Below, one piece after another: positions 172 to 61,000 of a stretch of DNA of 64,000 bases. The notes beneath the pieces were generated by a model. It saw nothing but the letters and a program-made list of their open reading frames with translations. It was not told where the DNA came from and made no database searches. The stretch lies in contig JBLDXI010000054.1 of the NCBI GenBank assembly GCA_047495785.1, positions 2,356,001-2,420,000 on the forward strand. Reading direction: 5' to 3'. Source of the stretch: Lepidodermella squamata. Taxonomy: Eukaryota; Animalia; Gastrotricha. Both the position numbers and the translations under genes were made by a program. How positions within the stretch are numbered: the first letter of the stretch is position 1; each line of letters opens with the position of its first letter.

Positions 172-1462
172 TCAACGAAGTAAATGCTTTCCAAAGTTAT
201 CAATGTCATAGCTGAAAACTTTAGCATCAAAGCCGTATATTCGTTTTATGCTTTTCAGCAGTTGATTTGGAACATTCTTCAGCAGCTCCTTCCAATTTTT
301 TTCATGGCTACGAGTTCGGGGTCCCAAAATTCTACGGATTTTTGCGTGATCATCGGCGCTAATATTGGTTCGCACTGATTTCAGGAATTTTCCGAGAATG
401 TATTGAGTTTCAGGATGCCATTTTTCCACATTTATCACATAATCATATTGAACGTGGCACGGGGCACATTGTAGATCGTAGGTGTACCCTAGCATAAATA
501 TTGGAATGAGTGAAATTCGTACATTTTTGACGGTAAAAACTCACAGTGAACATCTTGCCGCTTGGGGTATTCCACAATGTAACGGAGAAATTCCTCGAAA
601 GTCACTCCTGTTTCGTTTGCTAGATGCCTTTGTGAGCCTTTGCGGTATATTTTTTTTATTTTCGAGCCGACTAACTATGAACGGTAACTTGTGTAACTTT
701 CAGCTTTTCAACGTTGATTAAGCTTTTACCCAATTGTAATATTCATTGTGCCCCGTCAATTTATCATTCCATGCAGACTGAGAAAAACAGAAATATTGAG
801 AGGAAATGAGGGAAATATGTAGCTTATTTATACCACAAGGCGAATTAATGGGTGCCTGACCCAAGCGATTTTCGTGTAATTTGCCAACCGTTGTATTACT
901 CCTTCTTTTTCGTCGTAGAAGTATCTCAAATGTTTAAAAGTGGAGTTGCTCGGCCAAGCCGATGCGTTATGCATCGTCAAGTCAAGGGATGAAAGGCTGG
1001 GAAAAGATGAGTTTGGACCGAGAAAAAGTAAAAGCTGCTTTAGTTCCGATGACGCGACTTTGGGCATTCTAACAAAAAAAATCCATATCTGGTCAGATCG
1101 AGAATTTCGACTCACATGCAAAAAAGTAGCTTGTTCGCATCGTCCACGAAGATGGAGCTTTTGGGGCTTTCCTTTGACGTTATCTTGCGGTAAGCAATTT
1201 GATTCAATTCTGTCGGATTAACAGGAATCTGATAATGAATAGAGCATTGTTTTCTCGAGTTGATTGAGCGTTGTTTGAAAGATTCCTCCAATTTCTCAGA
1301 CGCTGAGTTGGCAAAGTTACCGAATAATGGCTGAGCTTTGCTATCGCCGGGAGCCTTGCTGAAGTCGAAAGTGTAAGTTACCCCATGGAGTACAATAAGT
1401 CCAGATAGTAAACTAGCTATCCAAAAGACTTTTCGAAAATCTGCGCTAGTAAACGCACACAT
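172..1462 (-). CDS. Carbohydrate sulfotransferase (Sulfotransfer_2/CHST-like), 5 exons
   Basis: Exons 1462-1116, 1068-834, 777-730, 674-545, 488-172, joined by GT-AG introns of 47, 56, 55 and 56 nt. The spliced protein has an N-terminal TM anchor, VDDANKLLFCIMPKVASS (5'-PSB), WVRHPLIRLVSAWNDKL (3'-PB), VTFEEFLRYI, DVHW..CAPCHVQYDY and IYGFDAKVFSY. Start ATG 1462 is inferred. Confidence 0.9.
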
Positions 1463-1915
1463 TAAGCTGTCAAAATGGCCGAAATGTTTAGGTTTGTTGT
1501 TGTGCACGTGCGTTGTGTTCGGAGTCACGACCAAGCCACTACTACGCACTATGCTGCGGTAAGCGTGACCACTGTTAGAGCCATCTCGCGAATGCTAGTG
1601 TATTCGGTTCATTCTTCGTGGCTCTGCCCCAAATGCTACAAGTGCCACAAAGTGCTGAGTTTGACTGCGGGTGAAAGCCGTACGGTCACTCCCGCATCTT
1701 TTTATTTCGACCATTTCGACCATCTGAGGCCTTAAAGGATTACGAGTTGCGATGATAGAAGATAGGAAATATCCCAAGGCTTATAGTTTGTTCAGCAATT
1801 TCCAAATGCGATTACATTTTTCATTTTTGAGATGAGCCCCTTTCCCGTAACACGTTACATTTCGTTTCAATTTAAATGGAATGGAAAGACAAATCTTCCA
1901 TAAATTTGTTACCCA

Positions 1916-1943
1916 ATTTATTTATTTATTTATTTATTTATTT
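1916..1943. repeat. (ATTT)n microsatellite
   Basis: About 7 tandem ATTT units visible. Confidence 0.8.
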
Positions 1944-2182
1944 CTTAATATAAATCTCTGTAGAAAATCACATCAATATAATAATTTGCATCTGGAATGA
2001 GGGGAAAATAAGAAGTGTTATGTATATATTCAAAGTAGCAGTACACCGCGATGCAGAGCATAGCACATCTTGCAGCTGGGATTCGTAGTCTTTGCTGGGT
2101 CAGATGATGTTTGATTTCACGCGAAAGGCATCTATTTCAAAACCGGTTTGAGCCATGGCAATTTGTCAGCCACCTTTCATCC

Positions 2183-3790
2183 CTACCATGGGTTGAAATC
2201 GAAGCCTCTGTACATAATTCGAGAGTTCCAATCTGTCGCCGTCAGCTTCACTCTCTCAACTATGTTCGGCTGATTTCGCCAGTAAGCATCCTGTCGTTCT
2301 TTCGGAACGTTCCAACCCGGGCCGTAGTGCGCCTCTAAATAGCCTTCAGGGTGGCAAGGTACGAGGTAAAGATCGCCGAGAAAAATGGCTGAACAGAGGG
2401 TTAGATCGCTCGGAAGTTCATAATGCAAAATCGCGTATTCCCAACTGACGAATCCTTGCACGTAATTGTACTTGACCTGAGGCTTCATATACAGGATGAA
2501 TATATCGATGCCAACTATTGGACCCACTCCGCCGAGTTGGATGTCGAATCTAACCTCAACACCATACTCCAAATCACCGAAAACTCGAGATGACATCATT
2601 TTCAGCGTCGAGTTCGATGGCGGATGGTGGTATTCTTCCTTAATTGGGAGGTAATTTTCATAAACGGTCTGGAAATTAATAAAAAATGACCGATAATAAG
2701 TTGTGGATGTAAGGTTTACCTTGACTATGTTTTCGTAAAAACTTTGATTCATTGCATAGCTCGGCAAGCTGAAGTCGATATCAACATCCGTCCAAACAAC
2801 AGAACAATTCCGGTACCAGCCAAGCATTGTCCCACCCTCGAGCGATAGAGGCATACCCGCAGATTCGTATAATTCATGAACACCCCAGGCATAAGGTGCG
2901 CCGAGGTCTGGCGTGTCCCCAACTAGAAACACATCCTCTGGTTTTTCGATCAGGGTGCCATTCTGACCGGGTTGCTTCTTCAAACAAGGCACAAATCGAC
3001 TGTGCCGTAGTGCATTGTAGGCGATTTTTGATAGGCTCGCCGCTGTCTCCACATTTTGGACATTCAAATTTTTCAGGAGTGACTTTTCGCTGAAAATTGA
3101 CGAGCAAATGCATGGTGGGCATTTGTTTGTCTTGAAAGCCGCTGGGTCCGTAAAATTGAAAGAATCTTTAGGCAGGCCGTAGCAGAAGTGGTATTTCTTA
3201 TAATTTGGCGGCGAGATTGAAAATAATTGAGCAATTAATAGAGATGTCCCGTTTTGAAAATTCACGTATAAATGCGTAAACGAGGTGTCGTAGCTTCGAT
3301 TTGAAGTCATCCTCTCGCAAATACTGCTCTCGGTTCCATTTTCACCGCGATAGCACATCAAAACCGTCAATTTTGGCGACGAAATTTGCTGGAGGAGGTT
3401 GTCAAGGAAGTAAAGCCCGAACTCGCTGTTGATCACAATTCCATAAGTCAAAAAATCTCGATCGTTCGAAAAGATCGAAGAGCCGTTCCAAGCTTCAGTT
3501 AACGAGGCCACTCCTAGGCTTATCAGGCCCAATTTAGCCGGGTTAAATTTGACGTAATATGGCGGTGTTGTTTGCTTAGTGACTACTGGCAATTCTGGAA
3601 ATTCCGTTGTGAATGATTTTACATCTGCTTTAGCCGGCTCTTGATTGACGGCTTTGATAATCGAAGTCGATATTTCTTCCGGGCTGATTTTGAATATGTA
3701 AAAGTAGGTCACAAAACCGACGAGAAGAACGGCAACCAGCATCGAAGAGTAAGCGCGCCATGTTAAAGATTTCGCCAGGTGGAATGACAT
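2183..3790 (-). CDS. LicD/fukutin-family phosphotransferase paralog 1 (type II membrane), 2 exons
   Basis: N-terminal TM; LEGGTMLGWYRNCSVVWTDVDIDF (LicD GGTLLG..R..DxD motif); GIDIF; LVPCHPEGYLEAHYGPGWNVP. A stop-free 51-nt intron at 2669-2719 (GTAAAC...TTTCCAG) lies at the same position as the paralog introns. Confidence 0.9.
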   Translation of the reverse strand: MSFHLAKSLTWRAYSSMLVAVLLVGFVTYFYIFKISPEEISTSIIKAVNQEPAKADVKSFTTEFPELPVVTKQTTPPYYVKFNPAKLGLISLGVASLTEAWNGSSIFSNDRDFLTYGIVINSEFGLYFLDNLLQQISSPKLTVLMCYRGENGTESSICERMTSNRSYDTSFTHLYVNFQNGTSLLIAQLFSISPPNYKKYHFCYGLPKDSFNFTDPAAFKTNKCPPCICSSIFSEKSLLKNLNVQNVETAASLSKIAYNALRHSRFVPCLKKQPGQNGTLIEKPEDVFLVGDTPDLGAPYAWGVHELYESAGMPLSLEGGTMLGWYRNCSVVWTDVDIDFSLPSYAMNQSFYENIVKVNLTSTTYYRSFFINFQTVYENYLPIKEEYHHPPSNSTLKMMSSRVFGDLEYGVEVRFDIQLGGVGPIVGIDIFILYMKPQVKYNYVQGFVSWEYAILHYELPSDLTLCSAIFLGDLYLVPCHPEGYLEAHYGPGWNVPKERQDAYWRNQPNIVERVKLTATDWNSRIMYRGFDFNPW

Positions 3791-4673: not shown

Positions 4674-7210
4674 CTATTCAAATGAGCGGAACATGATGCG
4701 TTTCACCCAATCAGAATAAGGCATAGCAATTCGTTTGATGATATTCGGCTGATTATACCAGTAACCGTCCTTCCTCGTCGCTGGAACTCGCCAATCGGCA
4801 CCGTAATGGCTCTGGATGTACGCCCCAGGGTTGCATGGGACCAGGAATAATTGGCCCAAGAAAAAAGCCGAGCACTGCGCAGTGCCATTGCGTGGAATTT
4901 CGTAATGTAACAAAAATTTTGCATGGTCATAAAATCCGAGAATGTAACTGTAGTTGACGCGCTGAAGGCTTCTAGATCGTTCGTCGTTTATGAAGAACGG
5001 AAAGACATCGATACCCGTGGTCTGCTTTTTTGGATCATTTTCACGGTGAACGTCAAAGCGAACCTCGACACCTGATGTGAGATCGCCGAAAATTCTTGCG
5101 ACCTTCATCACAAGAGATGACTCAGCATTGTTGATTGGCACCACGCGATATCTCATAGCTAATCGCTCCTGATATGCAACCTAAAGATTACAGAAAAAAT
5201 GTAGAAATTATTGAAGTGTGTCCAGAAATTTTTCAATCATTAAGAAATTGTAACATCACGTGGAATAAGAAAAATTAGACTAATGCAATTACTGCGCAAC
5301 TTGACGTCTATGAATGAACGAGCGGAAGCATGGCTGATTGCTATAGCTGTCATTTAAAAGCTGCTCCGACATGACGACTTACTGCCGAAGACCTAAGTCC
5401 GTTCAAATGAGCTTCAAGTCCTGTTAATCTGTTCCAATCAATTATGCTCGATCATGTGCAACCAGGTTGCAGGGGCGGGCTGTCACAAGTAATTCGAATC
5501 ATACTGAGAAAACGCCCGATAAATAGACGCAAATCTAACTGTTCTTATCACTTCACTACATTCGATCTTTCCAACTGTTTTGACCGATTTAAATCTCTAG
5601 AAATCATGTACGGAATCAGCTTTGCTGCACTCATCACGTTCTGCGTTTTTGCGCTCAACAATGGTTTCCCGATTCGCAAGGCGAAGGATGCTTACGGTGA
5701 GAACATTGTTCCTATCTACGTGATCAGCCAGAACCTGCATGGACCTGCTAAGCCGATTGAGTTGGTAGCCAATGGGTCGTCGAACGGCCCGAAAGTTGTA
5801 CTGCAGCAAAGCACTGCCCAAGTTCGAGCGCAGAAGCGATTCGCGCCCATGGATGATATGAACCCTTTACTCGCTACTTCGAATCAACTATTCGCTCCTG
5901 TTGGTGAGCAGGAAATGTTTGCCTCGCCGTTGGGAACAACTGGGTTCAAGCTGGCCTACCTTCATGGCGACATGGCTCCCTTGCAATCAAACGCGATGTT
6001 CCGCGAATAGCTTTACAAAAGCAACATGCTGTCATACTAGAGACAATCAATGAATCTTTTATCAAATATTCTGAAACCACACTACCCTCCTATAAGTCTT
6101 TAATATCATTGATTACAAATCACAAATAGGAAACAGGTTTTCTACAGTTTAAATCTAATCTAAGATAGTAAATACATTTTTCGAATAAAATTCCACCTTA
6201 ACAGCGTATATTTCTGTTACCTTGACTAAATTTGAGTAGAAAGACTTGTTTAAGGCCCAGCTTGGCACAGCTAGGTCCATATCGATATCACCAGGGATAA
6301 TTGAGCAGTTACGGTACCAACCCAACAGGGTACCGCCCTCCAAGCTCACCACCATTCCGTTCTGTTCGAAAAGCTCCCGAACTGCCCATGCATGGTCGGC
6401 AGCAAATGATGGCGTCTCCCCGTTCACGAAAACATCTCTCGGCCGTTGGATCGCATTTGGTTGTTGAAGTGGCGTGCAAGGAATGAAACGGCTATGCTTA
6501 TATAACTCATTCGCTGTTTTTGCACGCCACGACAGGCCGGCCTCGTCCAGTCGAAGTAGATCAGCTGATTTCCGAATACCTTTCAAGCCGGAGTTTCGAG
6601 ACAGAGTCCTACCCGAGAAAATTGATGCGCAAAGGCAGGGAGGGCAAGTTTCGGAGCTCAGAGTTTTTAACAGGAAGAAACGATCTGGAAGCCCGTAGCA
6701 AAAATAAAACCGCCTTAAAGAATTGCCAACGGAATGCAGTCTTGCGATGAGAATTGTCTGATTCGTCAGTGGAAGTTTTACGTAAATATGGCTCAGCCTA
6801 TCAATCCGAGAAGGTGCTTTCAGAATTCTAAGGCACGAGTTGCCTGAAAGCCCCTTTCCATCTTGCTTATAGCACAGAACGATTTCAGGGTTGAGATTGG
6901 TGTCAAGCAATGCAATTCGGCTGAATTCATCCAGCAAGGAGTTGTCATCCGGGACTCCGATAATCAAAAAATCGCGATCTTCGCCAAAAATCGTGGCGTT
7001 TGCCCATTCTCTGCTGATTGACGGTTTACCCAGGATGAAGACAGAACTTTTCGAATCCGAAATATTTGTGTAAGGAATTTCGTGAATGGAGATTACTGGC
7101 GTCTCGTGACACAATATTGGAAGGTTGATTTGCGAGCAAAGGAAGTAAAAAATCGCGGTTATGTTGATGGCGACCAGGCCCCAAAAAAGGCGCCTCGATT
7201 TGAATACCAT
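4674..7210 (-). CDS. LicD/fukutin-family phosphotransferase paralog 2, 2 exons
   Basis: Exons 7210-6221 and 5180-4674 join in frame (NLVK|VAYQERLAMRY). Motifs LEGGTLLGWYRNCSIIPGDIDMDL and LVPCNPGAYIQSHYGADWRVP. Intron 5181-6220. Confidence 0.9.
5606..6010 (+). CDS. Small secreted protein/possible peptide precursor nested antisense in the LicD-2 intron
   Basis: 134-aa ORF MYGISFAALITFCVFALNNG... with a signal-peptide-like start and RK/KR dibasic sites. ATG is preceded by TCTCTAG-AAATC. Composition is coding-like within an otherwise AT-rich intron. Confidence 0.6.
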   Translation: MYGISFAALITFCVFALNNGFPIRKAKDAYGENIVPIYVISQNLHGPAKPIELVANGSSNGPKVVLQQSTAQVRAQKRFAPMDDMNPLLATSNQLFAPVGEQEMFASPLGTTGFKLAYLHGDMAPLQSNAMFRE

Positions 7211-49400: not shown

Positions 49401-51171
49401 TGGCGTACGTAGCATGGACTGATTTAGATGAAAATAGCAACCCTTGAATATGGCATTCGGAATGCACGGAAGACCTGCCGATATAGATCAGTGCTTCTAT
49501 TCGTCGTTAGAACGAAAGCCTCCGGCAAAGATGAGCCCAATTGCGCGTGAATAGTGGATATTTTCATGCAACTTGAAAATCCACAAATGAAGTTTGTTTA
49601 AATTCGAAGCTATTGAACTCCATGGATAGGGTTTCAGCATATTTTTAGTAGATGTTGTTTAGGAGGCGTTTCTATTTCATCGTCTCTTGGTTCTCGAACT
49701 CATTAAGGTTCAAGTAAAACAACTTCGTCATGAGTCAGCAATAACATAAGCAGCCGTTTTTCAGCGGGTGGCAGATCTGCAGGCACGACTGCTTTGCCAT
49801 CAATAGTTCGCAGGAGTGGGGAGGAGTGAATCATTTGTGAAAACGAATTGAACATTTGAAGTAATGTTTCGATAACCCTAACCCTAAACCCTAACCCTTA
49901 CCTTACATCTCACGCCTTGGTCTGTCTTGCAAAATAAAGCCTCCATGAAATTACACATGTGCCACTCCGATTTCCAAACATGAATTTTCTCACAAAGTTC
50001 TCTGAAACTCGGCGCGATTTTTATATATTTCCTATTTTCCAATTTTTCGGAATGAATTTTGATTTCGTATTATTTTTTCTTAGAAACTGCTCCTTCGAAT
50101 TCGCAACAATCATTTTCATTGATCGAAATCGAAATCACTCTCAGACAACCCTACTGCTGCCGAACAAAACCGCCCGCTCGAGATTCGACCGGCGCCTCTT
50201 GTACCTCACCGACCCGGCAGCTATCCCGAACCAACAGCCCTACGAAGCCAATCCCATTCCGCGTGACCGAAGAGCCAGCCAAGGCCGATATCAAACGCGA
50301 ACATTCGCAATCGTTCGACTATATCGGCGTAATTCGAAAACGCTTGCCCGCTAATTTTAACGCGCCAATTACGACATGGGCGGAAAGTGTCACCCAGTTA
50401 TCGACCCGGTCGGTGATCGGCGACGACCCGGGTCTGTTGAATAACGGCGTTCATTTCCAAATCAACTCGCCCGATGACGGGTCAATGTCGCTGTCATCCA
50501 ACTGCACGGCCAGGTCGATTAAACTCGGCCAGCGGGTGTCGGTACCCCACGGCAGCCCGCGGCACCCGAGCATCGCCAGTATAACCAGCCCGGTTAACGA
50601 AAACGACCCGGTTCAATTCTTTTCCGACGCGAGGCGAAATAGTGTTAGCAGTAATTTGGTCTCACCCATCGAAAACCGGCCTAGCACCCCGGCGTCGGCG
50701 TTGATTGGCCAGCAGGTTAAGGCGGCTGGCGAGCAGCACAGCCGGTTCGGCGGGTTATACTCACCCGGGTCGACCGGGTCGCTGACCAACTCGCCGGTTA
50801 AAACCTACGCATCAGTCGCGGCTACGGCAAAGCCCCCGCCGAGTTTGACCGTCACTTACCAAACGACTTTCCACGGCCACCATCCGAACAGTACCCACCA
50901 CCACCACCCGCACCGGCCTAACGGCGGGCATTACCTACGGCATCATGCGAATGGCGAAAATTCGGTATCTCCGGCGTTTCGTCACGCAATTAAAAACACG
51001 CAGCGGCAACATAATAGGACAAACAGCGCGTCGAGCGGTGGAAGTGGCGGTGGTAATGAGCGGCAACAGCACCCAAATGGCCGGCAGTTCTTCAAGCCAG
51101 GGGGCGGAGCTGGCCGCGGCGGGTCAAACCAGGCCAATAATACTACGAATAATAAATCGGAAAAGCAGTGA
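43418..51171 (+). CDS. MAP3K20: MAP3K20/ZAK-like mixed-lineage kinase (kinase, zipper, SAM, C-terminal extension), 4 exons
   Basis: Exons 43418-44335, 44833-45204, 46459-47311, 50084-51171. Motifs GSGRYG, VAVKK, YLHSEAPVQIIHRDLKS, KICDFG and GTPAWMAPE; coiled coil; SAM WTEADVARWV..NHISGRRLLLL. Confidence 0.88.
45400..46330 (-). mobile_element. Degenerate Helitron Rep fragment in ZAK intron 2
   Basis: Minus-strand translation with stops and frameshifts: FGKVICYIYVIEFQKRGIPH, IDKTISAEIPDPESHPELH, GPCGHVHPSCPCMVDGKCSK, YPPYKRPDN, TAFFKLC..DFARQLTY. These are hallmark Helitron Rep motifs. Confidence 0.85.
47650..49970 (-). mobile_element. Possible decayed MULE (NOF/FB-like) element in ZAK intron 3
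   Basis: Broken minus-strand ORFs including FVYDVGRLLL...VFLCLNHLIK (D...CxxH, MULE-like), and CCCTAA repeats near one end. Boundaries are uncertain. Confidence 0.3.
49873..49898. repeat. Short interstitial (CCCTAA)n telomere-like repeat
   Basis: TAACCCTAACCCTAAACCCTAACCCT; a shorter GGTTAGGGTTAGGGTT lies near 56796. Confidence 0.6.
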
Positions 51172-52092: not shown

Positions 52093-55000
52093 ATGTCTAA
52101 AACGCCGGGTTCTGCTGGCAATGTGAATAAGCCGTTTAAAAAGCCGACCATGGTCCAGGATTCACCTGTTATCCCATCGAAAAACACACTTCCTGCAGGT
52201 CGGCGGCCCATAGCACCCCCAGCTAAGGCGCCGTCTGCTCTAGCGAGGCAAGAAATGCCCCCTCCACCAGTTCCTAGCCGAGATGTTGCCTCCCCGTCGC
52301 AAAATCGGTCTGAAAATCAGCCACCTCATCACCAAATCGCTGTATCGAAAAAATCGGATGATAATCAGAAGATTACTAGTCAAAACAACCGAGCGAAAGA
52401 GCGAGAAATCATGCCCCCTCCACCTCCTCCAGCTCAAATTTTGTCGCAGCAAATGACCCCATCAGTCAGACGACGCCAATCCGCTATCAATATCGACGTT
52501 CCACCGCCGATTGGCGCCTGGAAATCGAATACAAAAGTCGGGAAGGCTGTTTTCGAGTGCGGCGTGACGTTGTACCCGGATCGCCAAACTGAATGCGCAG
52601 TCGAGGGCAGTTTATTCCGCCGTGAATTTGCGAAAAAAATCGCGTCTGGCGAAATTTTGGTCGATGAAGTTGTGGCGTTCACGGAAGATTTCATCCAAGA
52701 TCGAACTCAGTTACTTCAAGCGTTAACTCCGTCGATTTTGCTGCGAAATGACGAAGATGGTGACAACGATGCGTCTCACCCGGAACAGCAGCACAGCTTT
52801 TTGCGGTTGTTACTCAGCGTCGAGGCGTTGCAGCAAGATATTTCTGATACTTTGCTGCTGAAATTGATTGATATTGCTGATCCGAATAACAGTACCTACA
52901 ACGCGGCGTTGGTTGGTGTTGATTTGCCGTTCATGATTGTATCTCAGTTCAAATGGCTCGAGCACATTGCGAGGCCGGATAAAATGATTGCCTCATTTCT
53001 CGACGCGATCTCACTAGATGACCGCAAGGTAACTAATTTTCTGCTTTTTTTCTTGTAAATTTTAATGAGAATTTTAACAATGCTTAATATTTTGAAATTA
53101 TTTTGTGAACATGTAAAAAAATATTTCATTTGAAAATATTGGAAAATATTTCTACGGTTCTACTATATTTGCGCAAGCATACCTATCAAGACATTTGAAG
53201 GGAAATTCCGTGAGTGTGTACTAATTTATCGATCCCTGTTGCATACAACAGGTATACAGGCATACAACTGTATAATAGGTAACTGATTGTTGCACAGATT
53301 AAAGTAGATAATCGCCCTAAATGGCATAGTTATTTAGAAAATTCGGCGCGCGTCATATAATTTGTCAGTGATCAGTGCTAAGAGCGATAAAATTCATTCA
53401 TTTCTATCATTTCCATAGAAGTGGAATATGACGACACGGAGAAGACGCAAATAAATCATAGCCGTTATTCACGTGAACAAAAACAAGCTATAAATAGATC
53501 GGAAAAATGCCGATTGGACGGTGATAAAGTGCACATGGAAAAGATGTCGTATAGGCGTATCTTGGTCTAAGTCTACGTTTATTTACACAAGTTCAAAGGT
53601 TATTACACCTTGAAATGATTATCCACACTGTTAACGACCACACTTGGTTTGGAGATAGGCGAGCTATTCACGAACGAAGTGATAAAGATGAGAAAATGAG
53701 CTTCTTATGTTCCATCCCTGATATTTCACATGTTATATCATGTCACATAACCTTTATGTGCCGGCTGCCAACCCTATATCCTTTTAACATGAATAAAGCA
53801 AAAGATAAGAGTGTAAATTCTATACATGAGGACTTTCTGTCTTATTATTCTGACTTATACTTCAGAATACAGAAACTTACAGAAGTGAGCATACTCTCTA
53901 TTCCACCTTCATCTTGTAAACTCATTCAACCCCTCATATAATTGTACATCTCAGTATTGCTTACGCTTAATGCATTGATTTTTACCATAGAAGTTGCGCG
54001 CTTATATAACAAATTTTAGTATTATAAACTACAACGCATAGTTTTCTTTGGGAAATGGATAACGAGACGAGACAACAGTTGGCAGAATTGGAAAGATTAT
54101 TGAAGAGTCAACATGAAAACGAAGAAACCGTCAAAGTTAATGTGATAACGGCTGGTCACACAGGTGTAGGCAAGTCCACGTTAATAAACGCCATATTCGG
54201 CTCCAAAGTAGCTCTTACCTCTGGCTGCAAACCGATGACGCAAGGTATTGAAGAACACGTGCTTGGACCTATGCACTTTTTCGACACGAAAGGGCTGGAG
54301 TTAGCAACCTGCAAAGTAATCAAGGAACAACTGATAACGCACATTCGCAAAAGGAACAGCAGTAAGGATGCCAACGAGCATATGCACATCGCATATTACT
54401 GCATTGATGAGCAAGGATGTCGATTGCAGGATATGGATAAAGATATAATACAGACGATGGTCGATGAAGGGGTAGTAGTAATAATGGTGGTAACAAAGTC
54501 ATTTAGCGATGAGGAGACGGAGCTATCAAAATCATTAGTGAAACATTTCCCCTCTTTGACGTTGGTTCGAGTTAACAGCTTGGACAAGAAAATGAGGGGC
54601 GACTGCATTATTCCACCTTATGGCGTTGACATAGTAGTACAAGAGACGGCAAAATGCATTCCTGAAGCCCAACAGATCGCTTTCGTTGCGGCACAGGTAG
54701 CTTGCGTTAAGAGCAAAAAATTCGCATGTGGACTTATTATCGCTGCATCTTGTACTGCCGCAGGTGCATTTGCTGCCACGCCGATACCGTTTCTGGATTT
54801 GGCTGCAACGCCTCCTGCGATAATGGCAATGTTCGCATCGATGAATGAGGTTTTTGATGTGCAAATGGATGTAAAGTCAAACTTCCAACTATTTAAAGGC
54901 ATTATTTTTAGTTATTTTTCATCCTCAGGGGCGCGGCTTACTGCGTTGCTTGTTGGTGAAGTATTACAACTTATTCCGGGGCTAGGTAGTATTTTGGGGG

Positions 55001-58000
55001 GTGCTATAACAGGTTCAACAGTGTTAGCAACAGTCGCTGTAATTGGCAACAATTACTTGCAGTCTCTTATTGAAACTTACATTGAAAACAACAGGAGTCC
55101 GCCATCTGCAGATGCTGTTATAGCACGCTTTCAACGTCACTGGGAAGACGTAAATAAAGTTAAGAATGAAGGGCAAACATAATTGGAGTGAGTTGAATAC
55201 TAAACTGTATGATTGTGTTGATATTTATGGCTTGCAACTACCTATTCTGTTGTGAACATTGATTTACCTGCATCTGCATTCTCCTCTTCCTTTCGAACAA
55301 AACCACATGATATTGATTTCAGAAAATGATAACCCATATTTGACGATGAATAAAGGGATGAACTATAATTACTTGCGAAGATTAACTGACGCGAAAATTA
55401 ATAAAATAAGAGAAAAATTAGAAATGTTTCTTATCATTTAAAAAAGTTCTTGCTAAAGTGTCTTATCAGTTTCAAAGGTTGCTATACATTTCTATAATAA
55501 TAATATGGATGATCAGTTTTTGTGTGTAAATACTGCAGGGGCGGCGCCCTGGCCAGAATGTGTGTAATTGCTTAGGTCGAAAAGTATTGCAGCCCGCTAA
55601 CCGCTGTAAGCAGTCCATGCATTTCTGATATACCGCACCCTGCAAAATGTCCGGATCTTTCGGCAATATAATGCAACAACAAAATTCGACGAGTCAGCTA
55701 TTTTTTTACTTTTTTGAAATGTTCCGAAAACTTGGTACCTAATTATCGAAAATAATGCAGCATTTACAAATATAAATTAACTGACATTTTTAGAATTATC
55801 CTACAAAAGCGCGGAATATTTAAAATTTAGATTATAATTTTTCAGGTAATCAGTAAAGAGCTTATTTCAGCTCTTCCTGAAATTTTCGGCGACGCCCAGC
55901 ACCCTCAAATCGTGGAAAAATTGCGGCATCTCCTCGACGACCCTAGATCACCCTACCTCGCCGATGTTCTCGATACATTTTCCAACCTAAATCTCGAACC
56001 AGAAATCGTCGAACGGCTTCGATTGAAAACTCTAGACGCCGTCAAGGCAATGCGAGTAGAAAACATCCCAGCCGCCTTAAAATTCGTGCTATCAACTGTC
56101 ACGGCTGAAAACGCGTTCGAGCTCGTTGGGCGGGTTCGAAATCAGTTGGAACATATCGACGATGAAGACTACTGCTCAACGTTTTCAAACGAACAAATTC
56201 AGTCTCTATTCAAGTTGGTCTTTCACGAAATTAAGGCGGCTTTACTGCTGAATAGTTGCCAGCTGAGTAATTGGACGAAAATGTACACGCAACAGCCGCC
56301 GCCTGGTACGCCGGATGAAATCCTGCATGGCACCTACGAAATTCACCCGTTTGATTTTTCAATGCTGGTCATTCTGCACGCGATTTCGTTCCGCAAAAAG
56401 GCGATTGAAACCGTGTTGAAAACGCGTCGCCGAGCTGGCTTGTTGACTGACAAAACGATTCAGCACGCGTTCAAGCGCTACCACGAGGTGATGGGTGAGC
56501 ATTTGCGGTCTGTCGTGGCGATTGCGGATTCGTGCGTTCGCAATACGGACAACACGATTTGCTCGCTTGGCCGGCTGGTCTACACGCAGGCGTTTTGCGA
56601 ATTCGACAACATTTGCGTCCGGCAAGATATTGTTGCCAATTTGGTCACTCACGTGTTCTCATTGCCTATAGGGTAGGTCAAATTTATAATATTTAACTAA
56701 AATGTATCCTCCTTAAAAATTTGAAAGGGAAAATCGTACGCCGGTACCAATTTTCATTTGATTCAATACCTAACCGTTTTATTCGTTATTCAAGTGGTTA
56801 GGGTTAGGGTTGAAGGCTGGGTTTTAAAATTTGGGATTTGGAACTGATTGTTTGGAGATAATTTGGTACTGAATTCAATAATTTTGTAATGATTTCACTA
56901 AATCCCATTGGAAATCCCTCAGCGTCTTATAAAATGTTGAATTACTAGCGACATTTCTCACCTCAGAATACCCCAGAAAATATCGACTGAGTGTAAGAAA
57001 TTTCTTTCTGAAATTTTTCCGATTATTGATTGATACACAAATTCGAAGTTTTCCAGCGCGCATTTTCTAGAATTCGCATTTTTTTCTTTTAAACAATTGA
57101 AAGTGATTTTGTTCCTTTTAATTTATACAAAATATTTCCCTGATATTTTACAAAAATTTATATGACTGATTTTTATTTAAAAAATACATCTAATGAGTGC
57201 TTAACTTTACTTCCCTTTTGAGTAATTTTTTCGCAAATAATGAATCAAGTATATGGGACCATAGAGATCAGATTTAATCTTATCCCCATGTATGGGACAC
57301 AGGTACGGGAAATACTGTAATAATAGTTCAAAAAGAGCTCCGAAGCCTTCAAAACACGCTCGTGTGCTCACTCCGCACGTGAGCATTTGATCGATTTCAT
57401 GAAATCCGAGCATTCTCTATAGTAGCAATATGGTAATGATACTCAGGTTTTTGCCGCTTATAAGAAGATAGATATTCTGTACTTGACGAAACCCCCTTAG
57501 TATTTGAAATGAACCGACCAATTTTACACTGTCTAGTCCATAACGAGAAAAATAACTTGGCATTTAAATGTGTTTAATCAGTTACAAGCATATTTATTTT
57601 AAGAAATTTACGCAAATTTGTAGTTTCTGACGCAAAATCGTGTAGCTGCTGATGCAACACATCATAATTTATTTACACACCGTCCTAGCGTGTAATTTTT
57701 TTCGGTGATTCACAGGGCTCGTAAATAATTTGTTTCTTATCTGCAGGTCCTCAAACTGTGCAATGGATATACTACTGGCTCTATCAGAAGAACGGCCCGA
57801 ATTGCTGGTTTCATTCCGCGTTTTCGTCCGAAACATGCTCGACGTTCTCGATAACTTGCAGCTTACCGATGTCCGAAAACTGTACCGAATTCTGGCAAAT
57901 CTCGCCTTTGCCGATTCAGTGACGCTGTCAAGCAACGAACGCGGCCGATTCAAAGACGACTTGTACATGATAATTCGTAAACAACTCGCATTTACCGGGC

Positions 58001-61000
58001 CTGAGAACGCGAAATTCCGCCAATTCGGCGTGCTAGCCGCCGCGATGCTAGCCCGCGGCATCGGCCAATGGGCCAAACGCAACCCGGACGAAGACGGTAC
58101 GAATTCAACCGTCGACCAGCCATCGACCAGTTCCGGGTCTGGGATTTCGAACGAAATCACCGAATTATTCCACCTGGTTCAACGATCCGTGACGTCAACT
58201 GACCCGAATAAAGCCCGGGACGTGACTTCGCTCGGTCTTTTCTACGATGAGCTGTCGATTTTGGTGAGATCAGGGTGTCTACCGGTTGATACGGTCGCCT
58301 GGTTGTCGGAGCAGCTGCCGAATATGTTTGTCAAAGATTTTCTCAACGAATCGACGCCCCAGGTCAAAATCGATAAATTAGTCTCGCAGGACCAGTTTGC
58401 ATTGGGCGAGGAAGAGTACCAGGCGATTATGATTTTTCCAGTCGCGGCCGGTGCCATTGTTCAACCGAACCGAAAAACTGCCGATATCTACCACCTGTGC
58501 CCGTTATTTCGCCTTCTCGCCTGCTGCTGCGAGGTGATCAATGGCGGAATCGATATTCTAGGCAGTCAACTCGTTTGCCCGATTAATTTCCCGGCTTTGA
58601 AGGCGCTGTCTCGATTAAGGAAGATGAAAGTTATGTCGCTGAATGAGCAGTACGCGGTTTGCGAGGCCCTACTCGCCCTGGTTAACTGGTTTCGCGAGAC
58701 CCTGTCCATCTATGGCCGGTCACCTGATCACGAAATCCGGGGTCATTGTTTGAAACGACTCCACGATTTGATCCCGATCGCGACTGAGCTGGAGGAATAT
58801 CACAAATCCTGCCCGAGTTGGGTGCCTCGTTATATTACCTCTTCGGTTTTTACCAGTCAATCAACCGGGGGTCGCGGGAGGCCGGCCGGGGCGAAACCCG
58901 CGAAATCGGGTAAAACCGGGGCGAAAAAACCGAAATTGGCCGCAGTCCCGACTCAACCCCTCGGCACCCAAGTCGCTGGGACCCAGGGTGTCGGGTTGAC
59001 CCAGGCTGGCCATAGCACGTCGACGTCAATCACAAATTTTACTGTCATGTCGAAATTCCGCATCGCCTTTCGTGAGTTGAGTTTGGAATCATTGCAGTTG
59101 ATTGCCGGCGATCTCGGGTTGAAAGAAGCTAGTTCGTCCCTGCTTCAAATGTCAGCCTCATCCGCTAATTCGACCTTCTCCTCAGTTTTCACACCCCTCG
59201 AGGCGTTGTACCTGGTCGAAGATTTGATTGATAAGTTGAAGTACAAGCTTATCAGGGCGGGTTCAAAGGCGTTCGGCGCGTTTGCTGGGTCGAATTTTTC
59301 GGGTCAAACCTCGGAAATTGTTCACCGGTCTTTGGACGAAAAATCGCTGGATGAAGTCCTTGAAACTATTGTCGACCTAGTCGGGCCAATGTGTAGCCTC
59401 GCCCAGGGTTGTTTTGCTATGGTCAGGCAGGTTTTGGACGAATCTGATGGGATGGTTGAAAGGCTGGACGAACGAGCTGAATGGACGTCTGGCCTTCGGT
59501 TGTACGGGCTCATTTTCGACTGTTTCGGCATGTTGCTGGTCAACGTGCCGACTCTGAAGCCGGATTTGACGAAGCGACTTGTTTTCAACATTGCGAATTC
59601 GCCGGTTTCGAACGGCGATGAAATTTCGCATACGCCATCGGCTAATACGGACTATATTAGTGAGGCGTTCAAGTTTTTGGCCCAATTTTCGCCGTGTCTA
59701 CCGACTCTACTCATCTCTGGGTCTTACTTGAAGATGATGGAGGCGTTGCTGGCTCTTTGCAAGCGAGGAACACCGGTTCGATCAAATTTATCGACCAGAA
59801 TTTGTGAGTCATTTATTAAATTAGATTTGATTTAAATTTATTATTTTATTAAATTTTTAAGCTGGATTTTTTATTTGTTAAATTTTTAATTATTGACTTA
59901 AATATCTTTTTATTTATATTTATTTTCAGATGAAATCTGCGAATCGCTCCTGAAAAGTGACTGGACTGATGCGGAAACTGAGCCCGGTTGTTCGTCCTAT
60001 AAAGTTATTTCGCAAATTTTCCAAGCTTATCTCATCTACAACCCTGAAAAACTGCACGATTCACTGCGCGAATTTCTCGACGGCCCTGTCGGCGAGTTGA
60101 CCGGCCCCGGAGCTGGTAGAGACACGGTTTCAACGCGTTTCCGCAGTCTTTCAAGGTAATGTTTTTGTTGAAATTTATTATTCCTTTTATTTAATGTCAA
60201 TTTTCAGAAAAACTTTCCCGGCTTTTTACGAAGTGATGTTGACTCAGCTGATTCGGCTAGCCCAGACCACGCCGTCGCGTATAGCCGACGATGACGACGA
60301 TGAGACGAGTTCGCAGGGCAGCCAGGCGCAGCGTAGTCAGGCGTTATTCCCGCCGCAAAACTCGACCACTGATCTCGGATTTTTATCACAGCGCCACCAC
60401 ATGGTACCAGACGGCCAGAAATTCGGCTATCGCGAGTTGTTGCAAGCTTGGGACGATCTCGGCTGTGTTTTTCGCGACACGGTTGAACTAGTCCGAGTTT
60501 TCAGCGGCCGTAGTTGCCTAGTTTCAGTCATTAAGGTAGATTTTTTTCAAATCAGAAAATTCCTCCTTAAAAATTATATTTTTTTCAGCATGGGCGTAAT
60601 TTTTTGGAAATTTTTGCGAAACGTGGTATGCCGTTGTTGGACGTTGCTTTCAAGGGCAATCAAACGCAAGTTCGCGAGATTTTGTCCGTTGTTCAGAAGG
60701 GTACGCGAGTGCTTCACATCGTTTGCTCTGAGTCGAAAGCGCACAAAGACGTGGCTGTAATTTCGATGGTGCCGCGGTTGAAGAAAACGCTCGAGTGCTT
60801 CATTTACCGCGTCAAGCAAATGCTGACGGTTAACGGGTGCCTTGAAGCGTTTTTTTGCGGTGTCTTGAAGTCGAGAAATATCAAGGGTGAAGAAATTTCG
60901 TCGCAAAATCCGTACAAGCCTGAGGAGGACGAGGAAGATGAGGGCGACGAAGAATCGAAGCCGAAATCGAAGGGTAAAAAGCGAAAAAGTGAGGCGAAAC

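Follow-up and report, generated by a model that had tools for sequence, protein, structure and literature searches.

A bacterial-type GTPase-DUF697 gene nested in a FANCD2 intron of the gastrotrich Lepidodermella squamata

How does a gene of bacterial type come to lie whole within an intron of a conserved animal DNA-repair gene, and what might it do there? The question is raised by a 64,000-nucleotide stretch of the genome of the gastrotrich Lepidodermella squamata (assembly GCA_047495785.1, contig JBLDXI010000054.1, positions 2,356,001 to 2,420,000; the window hereafter, to which all positions refer). Within it, an intronless open reading frame (ORF) of 375 amino acids, predicted to encode a GTPase domain followed by a DUF697 domain, is located inside FANCD2. 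Comparison with its relatives indicates that bacterial, horizontal ancestry is the best reading of this gene, and a well-supported one. The explanation favored here, with considerable confidence, is that a bacterial GTPase-DUF697 gene was transferred long ago, that it now has its own transcript nested in the FANCD2 intron, that the block of DNA around it reached this site later or was lost from the other haplotype, and that its product would be a GTP-switched membrane protein.

The nested gene and its host intron

Parts of a FancD2 homolog (PF14631) are encoded by the ORFs at 52093-53058, 55912-56676, and 57730-59835, which share the strand of the GTPase ORF, and the ariadne-2 (ARIH2) gene is found downstream of FANCD2 in the window. 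The intron that carries the nested gene features the junctions CAAG/GTAACT at the donor and TTTCAG/GTAATC at the acceptor (Table 1). Read across the intron, the exons give ..DDRK/VISKELIS.., and these residues align to ..DDLR/VVSRELIS.. in the uninterrupted FANCD2 of a metagenomic relative (L006-L008), thus the FANCD2 exons join in frame. Gene order in this relative is conserved with that of the window (unknown gene, FANCD2, ARIH2), and identity is 62-86% for ARIH2 and 46-65% for FANCD2, varying between exons; the upstream exon is 49% identical to L006 4714-5331 by tblastn. The relative's FANCD2 is uninterrupted at the positions of the window's first two introns, and its 12-kb locus contains no GTPase.

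The intron is made up of two distinct kinds of DNA. Its two edges are AT-rich and host-like, while the inner block between them, which comprises the ORF with 885 nt upstream and 508 nt downstream, has few runs of six or more A/T bases (0.8 per kb vs. 13-14 per kb at the edges). The GC content at third codon positions (GC3) of the GTPase ORF is 0.42, compared to 0.50-0.63 in most host exons. A first-pass annotation of this DNA, made from the letters alone, had described a 375-residue intronless ORF on the FANCD2 strand, flanking exons that splice in frame around it, a block poor in long A/T runs, and a preference for A/T-ending codons, and all of these descriptions hold.

Three sequencing runs from three different studies contain the sequence, and it is identical in each: X1, which is DNA-like and dates from 2024, X2 from 2015, and X3 from 2014. 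X1 is possibly the sample behind the window assembly and hence not independent. Its contigs at 52944-53510 and 53481-55905 match the window with zero mismatches, the former bridging the exon and the intron and the latter running from the block through the 3' edge into the next exon. In X2, error-free contigs at 52961-53051, 53026-53166, and 53137-53299 walk from the FANCD2 exon through the 5' intron edge into the block. The first-pass annotation had called for reads across both junctions at host-level coverage; X1 provides contigs over both at host haploid depth, and X2 spans the left junction. The GTPase ORF is a genuine part of the animal's genome, and contamination is practically excluded.

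The depth of X1 also bears on the state of the block. Where two alleles are visible, each has a depth of about 47-50 (e.g., at 55875 and 56478-56520), and where alleles collapse the depth is about 82-99, whereas over the block it is 41-48. A 2425-nt contig over the nested gene has a depth of 48 and no bubble, and a nearby exon shows eight differences in 470 nt. The simplest reading of these depths suggests that the block is present on one haplotype only. Within the block lies a short dispersed repeat: the summed depth of X1 reaches 855 in the bin 53248-53428, and at 53386 and 53403 six to eight contigs have depths of 988-3137, compared to 48 for the remainder of the block.

A carrier element, for which the first-pass annotation had proposed a search, was considered as the vehicle of the block and rejected. 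There are no terminal direct or inverted repeats beyond matches of chance size, no second copy of the block or of the GTPase protein within the window, no Pfam family among the small ORFs of the flanks, and no Rfam or plasmid DNA match to the flanks. A search of PHROGs gave one weak match of unassigned function, and three contigs of IMG/VR carry relatives at 29-30% identity, which are no nearer than the bacterial ones. Bacterial signals were also lacking in the block: sigma-70-like sites are no more frequent than expected by chance, and the stop codon is not followed by a terminator.

Table 1. Coordinates of the nested gene, its parts, and its surroundings in the window
Feature	Position	Strand	Details
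GTPase-DUF697 ORF, intronless, 375 aa	54055-55182	+	ATG start, without internal stop
G domain (Pfam MMR_HSR1), residues 30-148	54142-54498	+	41.6 bits, cut-off 21.9
DUF697 (PF05128), residues 223-335, with PIPF motif	54721-55059	+	31.1 bits, cut-off 27.7; 2.3e-7
Transcript-like contig span	53973-55350	+	X2 contig of 1454 nt, depth 107.7, no mismatch; X3 pieces end at 55356
First AATAAA past the stop codon	55349-55354	+	At 3' end of transcript-like contigs
FANCD2 host intron, GT..AG, phase 0, carrying the nested gene	53029-55845	+	Junction sequences; L006 FANCD2 contiguous at 5331/5332
Inner block of distinct composition (approximate boundaries)	53170-55690	+	GC 0.39, 0.8 A/T runs per kb
Short multi-copy stretch (dispersed repeat) within block (approximate limits)	53370-53430	.	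X1 depth
Host-like AT-rich 5' intron edge	53029-53169	+	GC 0.19, 14 A/T runs per kb
Host-like AT-rich 3' intron edge with acceptor TTTCAG	55691-55845	+	GC 0.25, 13 A/T runs per kb
FANCD2 exon upstream of host intron, ending ..SLDDRK	52093-53028	+	Pfam FancD2 6.5e-12; GT donor at 53029
Following FANCD2 exon, starting VISKELISALPEIFGD	55846-56676	+	Pfam FancD2 6.5e-30; 65% identity to L006 5332-6153

The GTPase-DUF697 family and the ancestry of the gene

The protein was first proposed to have the architecture of a bacterial GTPase joined to DUF697, and this is borne out by two Pfam domains above their cut-offs (Table 1) and by a family that is overwhelmingly bacterial. The G domain features the P-loop GHTGVGKS at residues 34-41, DTKG at 77-80, and TKSFSD at 147-152. 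A hydropathy scan places two hydrophobic, Ala/Gly-rich segments at about 222-247 and 295-332. The AlphaFold2 model has a mean pLDDT of 85.7, with a confident fold along the whole length: residues 26-190 form a G domain of the TRAFAC class, and residues 191-372 form long helices (191-240, 247-266, 273-291, and 311-344). In structure searches with Foldseek and VIA-align, of which the best 50 matches each were considered, the nearest solved G-domain folds are EngB (Z 19.0), Toc33 (Z 18.7), septins (Z about 17), Era, and GIMAP, the last in Foldseek; no solved structure among these matches covers the helical half. Several GTPases of these types work through nucleotide-dependent dimerization.

The likeness to eukaryotic members of these groups is confined to certain features. 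The window protein shares its G-domain fold with Toc33/34, GIMAP/AIG1, and septins, and, like Toc34 and several GIMAPs, it would follow its G domain with a hydrophobic anchor, here a predicted one. Unlike these proteins and the IRG GTPases, it matches the Septin, AIG1, Toc, and IIGP models weakly and at the start of the G domain only, or not at all, and its DUF697 half has no solved counterpart. A resemblance to the animal IRG immunity GTPases had been suggested from the sequence and is not supported, with no Pfam IIGP (PF05049) match at an E of 0.01 or below and no IRG structure among the best 50 of either structure search. Two unlabeled Atlas clusters in which 21-44% of members have an IIGP match align to the model at TM 0.59-0.64; the IRG likeness is that of TRAFAC GTPases generally.

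Relatives of the protein are numerous and distant. A word-index search returned 1102 matches, the best at 31-37% identity, and nearly all of the matches listed cover 83-97% of the query, are 353-404 amino acids long, and contain the same two domains (E down to 4.6e-54). Because the claim of transfer depends on which relatives exist, 1.84 billion representative proteins were also searched exhaustively with HMMER, and none of the 2486 matches exceeds 37% identity. The ten nearest Atlas clusters shown are all 93-100% bacterial. In a scan of prokaryotes with one genome per species, relatives were found at 34% identity or less, and the phyla with relatives are Spirochaetota, Bacteroidota, Chloroflexota, Bacillota, Actinomycetota, and Planctomycetota; no bacterial group stands out as the donor lineage, identity being at most 34-37% across these six phyla. 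Named sources among the matches listed include Flavobacteriia, Gemmataceae, and Chloroflexaceae, and the only named animals among them are the bdelloid rotifers Adineta vaga and A. ricciae, with no other named animal, fungus, or plant among the best matches. The HMMER comparison that the first-pass annotation had proposed thus yields about 2,500 relatives whose named sources are nearly all bacterial. The exact window protein has no record in the gene-call collection.

Bacterial stand-alone proteins of this kind carry Pfam MMR_HSR1 and PF05128 and are named 'YcjF family protein' or 'GTP-binding DUF697 domain-containing protein' by NCBI. The window protein has their domain order and their length (355-400 aa), and it aligns with them from end to end. 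In an alignment of 42 sequences it keeps all 26 invariant columns, including the P-loop, DTxGLE, the TK of G4, and PIPF. It differs from the bacterial proteins in its low identity (37% at most), in a 4-residue insert in DUF697, and in the change of 16 of the 41 near-invariant residues, among them two switch-I glycines (G56S and G58C), and its gene, whose transcript ends are of eukaryotic type, resides in a nuclear intron of an animal. Every other row of the alignment keeps at least 36 of the 41 near-invariant residues and the window protein 25, which makes it, as judged from these sequences, the most derived family member sampled.

Two further occurrences of the family deserve mention. A 764-aa protein (P0134; L001-L004, 6001-8295) consists of a tandem double GTPase-DUF697 and is encoded beside a large LRR protein; the contigs that carry it are eukaryote-like in being extremely AT-rich and poor in genes. 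An identical copy is present in 27 metagenome blocks, and P0134 may represent another eukaryotic uptake of the family. In the bacterial metagenome-assembled genome GCA_002313795.1 (L005, 2406-13734), two adjacent GTPase-DUF697 paralogs of 577 and 384 amino acids have a WYL-domain gene on one side and, on the other, an HTH gene with type I-E cas3/cse1 after it. This defense-island-like setting was found once only, and no conserved neighbor was seen over 26 bacterial loci.

The ancestry of the gene was examined in an unrooted tree of 50%-identity representatives under a site-heterogeneous model. A first quick tree, in which a branch as long as 4.4 substitutions per site led to the window protein amid close bacterial sequences, was uninformative and was replaced. 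In the main tree the sister of the window protein is P0149 (support 100/98), an orphan protein from an ENA metagenome contig of 1.4 kb whose non-coding flanks have a GC of 0.34-0.36 and whose ORF has a GC of 0.46; P0149 is probably eukaryotic too. The two proteins have in common the 4-residue insert and the changes W114Y, E125Q, and K305Q, and thus their pairing is not a product of branch attraction alone. No more members of this subclade were found by a word search with P0149, which returned P0149 alone, or by a scan of JGI metagenomes. The only close kin of the window protein is 34% identical to it, which is saturated for dN/dS, and no second allele was seen.

The pair joins the Adineta clade with a support of 93/82. 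The Adineta 'G domain-containing' proteins (e.g., CAF1395984.1 and I4U23_011577) resemble the window protein in being encoded by an animal, in lacking introns, and in their architecture. They are, however, only 34% identical to it and retain more of the 41 near-invariant residues (37-38). In A. vaga the copy consists of one exon, on chromosome CP075492.1, and unlike the window gene it does not look nested, as no overlapping gene call is on record in what is a sparse table. The phylogeny proposed in the first-pass annotation accordingly places the window protein among non-animal sequences, with Adineta as the sole named animal, and the central proposal of that annotation, horizontal acquisition, is supported by the domains, the bacterial range of the family, the integration, and the position in the tree.

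Probable transcription, proposed function, and neighboring features

Beyond its presence in the genome, the gene appears to be transcribed. In X2, the FANCD2 exons have depths of 1-12 and the stretch 55420-55781 has none, while the contig over the GTPase gene reaches 107.7. X3 contributes just three pieces, all between 54233 and 55356 and at depths of 2-7. This gene-by-gene pattern of depth in X2 is RNA-like and makes expression of the GTPase gene probable, with X2 and X3 being guessed to be RNA and contig depth being a crude measure; neither a poly(A) tail nor strand information was seen in the X2 and X3 contigs. The first-pass annotation had flanked the ORF with a TATA-like site and an AATAAA signal, and these two fare differently. 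AATAAA occurs at 55349 and 55400, and the motif is frequent, with 164 copies in the window, so that the copy at 55349 is meaningful only because 55350 and 55356 are where the transcript-like contigs stop. As for the TATA-like site (about 54001-54010), it falls within the transcript-like contig that reaches 53973 and is a putative promoter only.

Two observations on X2 accompany this pattern. Between 52483 and 56019, ten 'opposite strands' joints with offsets of about 74-122 nt are found in low-depth contigs and look like fold-back or library artifacts; because of such joints, the first 76 nt of the transcript-like contig are unusable for placing its 5' end. A second contig of 1.5 kb that enters from upstream (depth 56.7) is likewise gene-sized, and it may be a transcript of a 370-aa ORF just upstream of FANCD2 (50059-51171, +). 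This ORF has no Pfam family and is 38% identical to an ORF at the equivalent position in the metagenomic relative.

The function of the protein can be approached through its parts. The ancestor would have been a bacterial stand-alone gene of the 'YcjF family protein' kind, probably acquired long ago, and the roughly 2.5-kb block would have come to the FANCD2 intron later, or have vanished from the other haplotype, leaving a nested gene with its own sense-strand transcript. In the encoded protein, the N-terminal TRAFAC-class G domain, which is similar to those of EngB, Toc34, and septins, would serve as a nucleotide switch, probably by dimerizing, and the two hydrophobic helical hairpins of DUF697 would tether the protein to a membrane. 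Action at the membrane in stress, maintenance, or remodeling seems most plausible, and the chances that this is a GTP-switched, membrane-embedded protein of membrane stress or remodeling are roughly even.

A parallel may be drawn with Escherichia coli, where YcjF, a DUF697 protein of the inner membrane, adjoins the P-loop NTPase YcjX; the genes ycjX and ycjF are almost always adjacent, and the sigma-32 unit that they form is frequently associated with psp membrane-stress operons (PMC3041696). By analogy, the window protein would combine an NTPase with a DUF697 membrane module in a single chain. The comparison extends only so far: YcjX belongs to an NTPase family different from MMR_HSR1, and the window protein has no match to the YcjF-named NCBIfam model at an E of 0.01 or below. 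A role in defense is possible. PADLOC gave weak matches only, to LeoBC (1.3e-5) and LeoA (9e-4) in the N-terminal part of the protein (residues 3-76 and 14-146), and no defense-system model in it matches most of the length of the protein.

Other features of the window lie outside these subjects. The second FANCD2 intron, at about 56674-57745, contains a very high-copy repeat at 56727-56862, where the summed depth of X1 rises to about 27,000 from about 50-100 nearby. Its loose ends and inserted letters are telomere-like (AACCCTAACCC and GGTTAGGATTAGATTAGGGTTAGG), and numerous differing 'skip' joints suggest variable tandem units. A 351-aa ORF on the reverse strand (6155-7210) has a short match to the LicD family (PF04991, 1.6e-5, residues 281-316).

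Weighing the explanations

A fast-diverged, old acquisition fits the evidence better than a fresh transfer at this site. The old acquisition is favored because there is no close homolog, the divergence is extreme, bacterial remnants and signals are lacking, a host repeat lies in the block, and the nearest kin are eukaryote-like. Recent movement of the block, on the other hand, is favored by how sharply composition changes at its borders, by a depth that is that of one haplotype, and by the lack of the block in the relative. Both are accommodated if the gene was acquired long ago and was then relocated within the genome or lost from one haplotype, a history that is judged likely as part of the favored explanation. 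What we observe are the sequence, the domains, the integration, the transcript-like contigs, the taxonomic range of the family, and the position in the tree; the age of the transfer, the hemizygosity, the membrane insertion, the GTP-dependent action, and the biological role are what we infer.

Several points weigh against this explanation. The grouping of the window protein and P0149 with Adineta unites long branches and could be due to attraction. The AU test does not reject a tree in which every eukaryote-like row falls into one clade (p-AU 0.24), so that there may have been one transfer or several. The ARIH2 of the window shows 43-45% identity to its arthropod, annelid, and mollusc counterparts, and the best 120 matches include no rotifer; for this reason the host phylogeny does not back shared ancestry with the Adineta copies. 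The retention of 25 of the 41 near-invariant residues could mean relaxed constraint instead of new function. The hemizygosity is read from contig depth, and contigs cannot prove absence. X2 and X3 are RNA only by guess, contig depth is a poor gauge of expression, and the FANCD2 splice joint across the host intron was not seen in the runs. Lastly, a literature search found no study of a GTPase-DUF697 protein, the bacterial ones included.

The changed residues raise the possibility that the gene is a decaying passenger, i.e., an old transferred gene that is still open and transcribed and from which selection for the ancestral activity has gone. The loss of 16 near-invariant residues, including glycines in the switch-I stretch, would be expected of such a gene, as would its apparent presence and absence between haplotypes and a GC3 that is low and near the local non-coding level. 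Yet 375 codons have stayed open where the next-longest ORFs of the intron reach 108-109, every invariant residue is retained along with the P-loop, DxxG, and TKxxxD, the fold is confident over the full length, and the depth in X2 exceeds that of the neighboring genes. This makes decay an unlikely account.

A more far-reaching proposal, and one with little chance of being right, is that the family entered a rotifer-like lineage early and evolved fast as an animal GTPase of membrane defense or repair, parallel to GIMAP and IRG, that the block is a presence/absence polymorphism, and that its insertion created or greatly enlarged the FANCD2 intron. The last part is based on the absence of the intron from the relative and on AGGTAA, which occurs at both ends of the host intron (53027-53032 and 55844-55849). 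Taken with the lack of this intron in the relative, the pattern could reflect the gain of an intron at a proto-splice site, but equally chance combined with intron loss in the relative. If the proposal were true, the sense-strand polyadenylation signals in the intron could cut short the FANCD2 transcripts of that allele.

Quite unlikely is a recent, direct bacterial transfer into this intron, with the 2.5-kb block as the donor fragment. The first-pass annotation had implied a fresh and private acquisition of this kind, and it would be in keeping with a block whose composition is sharply unlike that of the intron edges, whose depth is that of a single haplotype, and which the relative lacks, as well as with an intronless ORF whose GC3 is below that of the host exons. 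Against it, nothing is above 37% identity among about 15 billion proteins, and the protein is the most derived of its family. The 885-nt and 508-nt flanks contain no remnant of a bacterial gene, with sigma-70 and terminator signals at chance level, a dispersed repeat of the host is already within the block, transcript ends of eukaryotic type are present, and the tree unites the protein with other eukaryote-like copies, the intronless bdelloid ones among them. The fresh acquisition is therefore judged less probable than the old one.

It is very improbable that the gene belongs to a vertically inherited eukaryotic family lost in most animals. Eukaryote-like copies do exist in Adineta, on the AT-rich, gene-sparse contigs of P0134, and probably in P0149, and their union in one clade is not rejected. 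Against this, bacteria from at least six phyla make up nearly all of the named sources of the approximately 2,500 relatives, there are only a few eukaryote-like rows, all of them intronless and nested among bacterial tips, and the best matches include no further named animal, fungus, or plant. Bacterial contamination or a chimeric assembly, which could appeal to X1 as the assembly's own sample, is dismissed on account of mismatch-free contigs over both junctions at host haploid depth, the left-hand bridge in X2 (a different study and year), identical sequence in the runs of three studies, and flanks that are non-coding, AT-rich, and unlike bacterial DNA.

The old acquisition followed by relocation or loss leaves the existing picture of gene transfer into micro-invertebrates unchanged, and the gene is a sound but unsurprising case within it. 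Like the horizontally acquired genes of bdelloid rotifers, it is an intronless gene of bacterial type among intron-bearing animal genes and is apparently expressed; unlike them, it is nested on the sense strand in an intron of a conserved DNA-repair gene and is apparently hemizygous. As such, it is a well-anchored example of a bacterial-type gene resident and apparently expressed in an animal, and it adds an uncharacterized family of DUF697 membrane GTPases to the genes with at least one known crossing into micro-invertebrates. With its nesting in FANCD2, its possible presence on one haplotype, and a relative that lacks the intron, the locus offers a small natural experiment on how foreign DNA settles into introns and perhaps enlarges them. 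Since the family is also found in bdelloid rotifers, where it is undescribed, an animal system could help to reveal the function of GTPase-DUF697 proteins.

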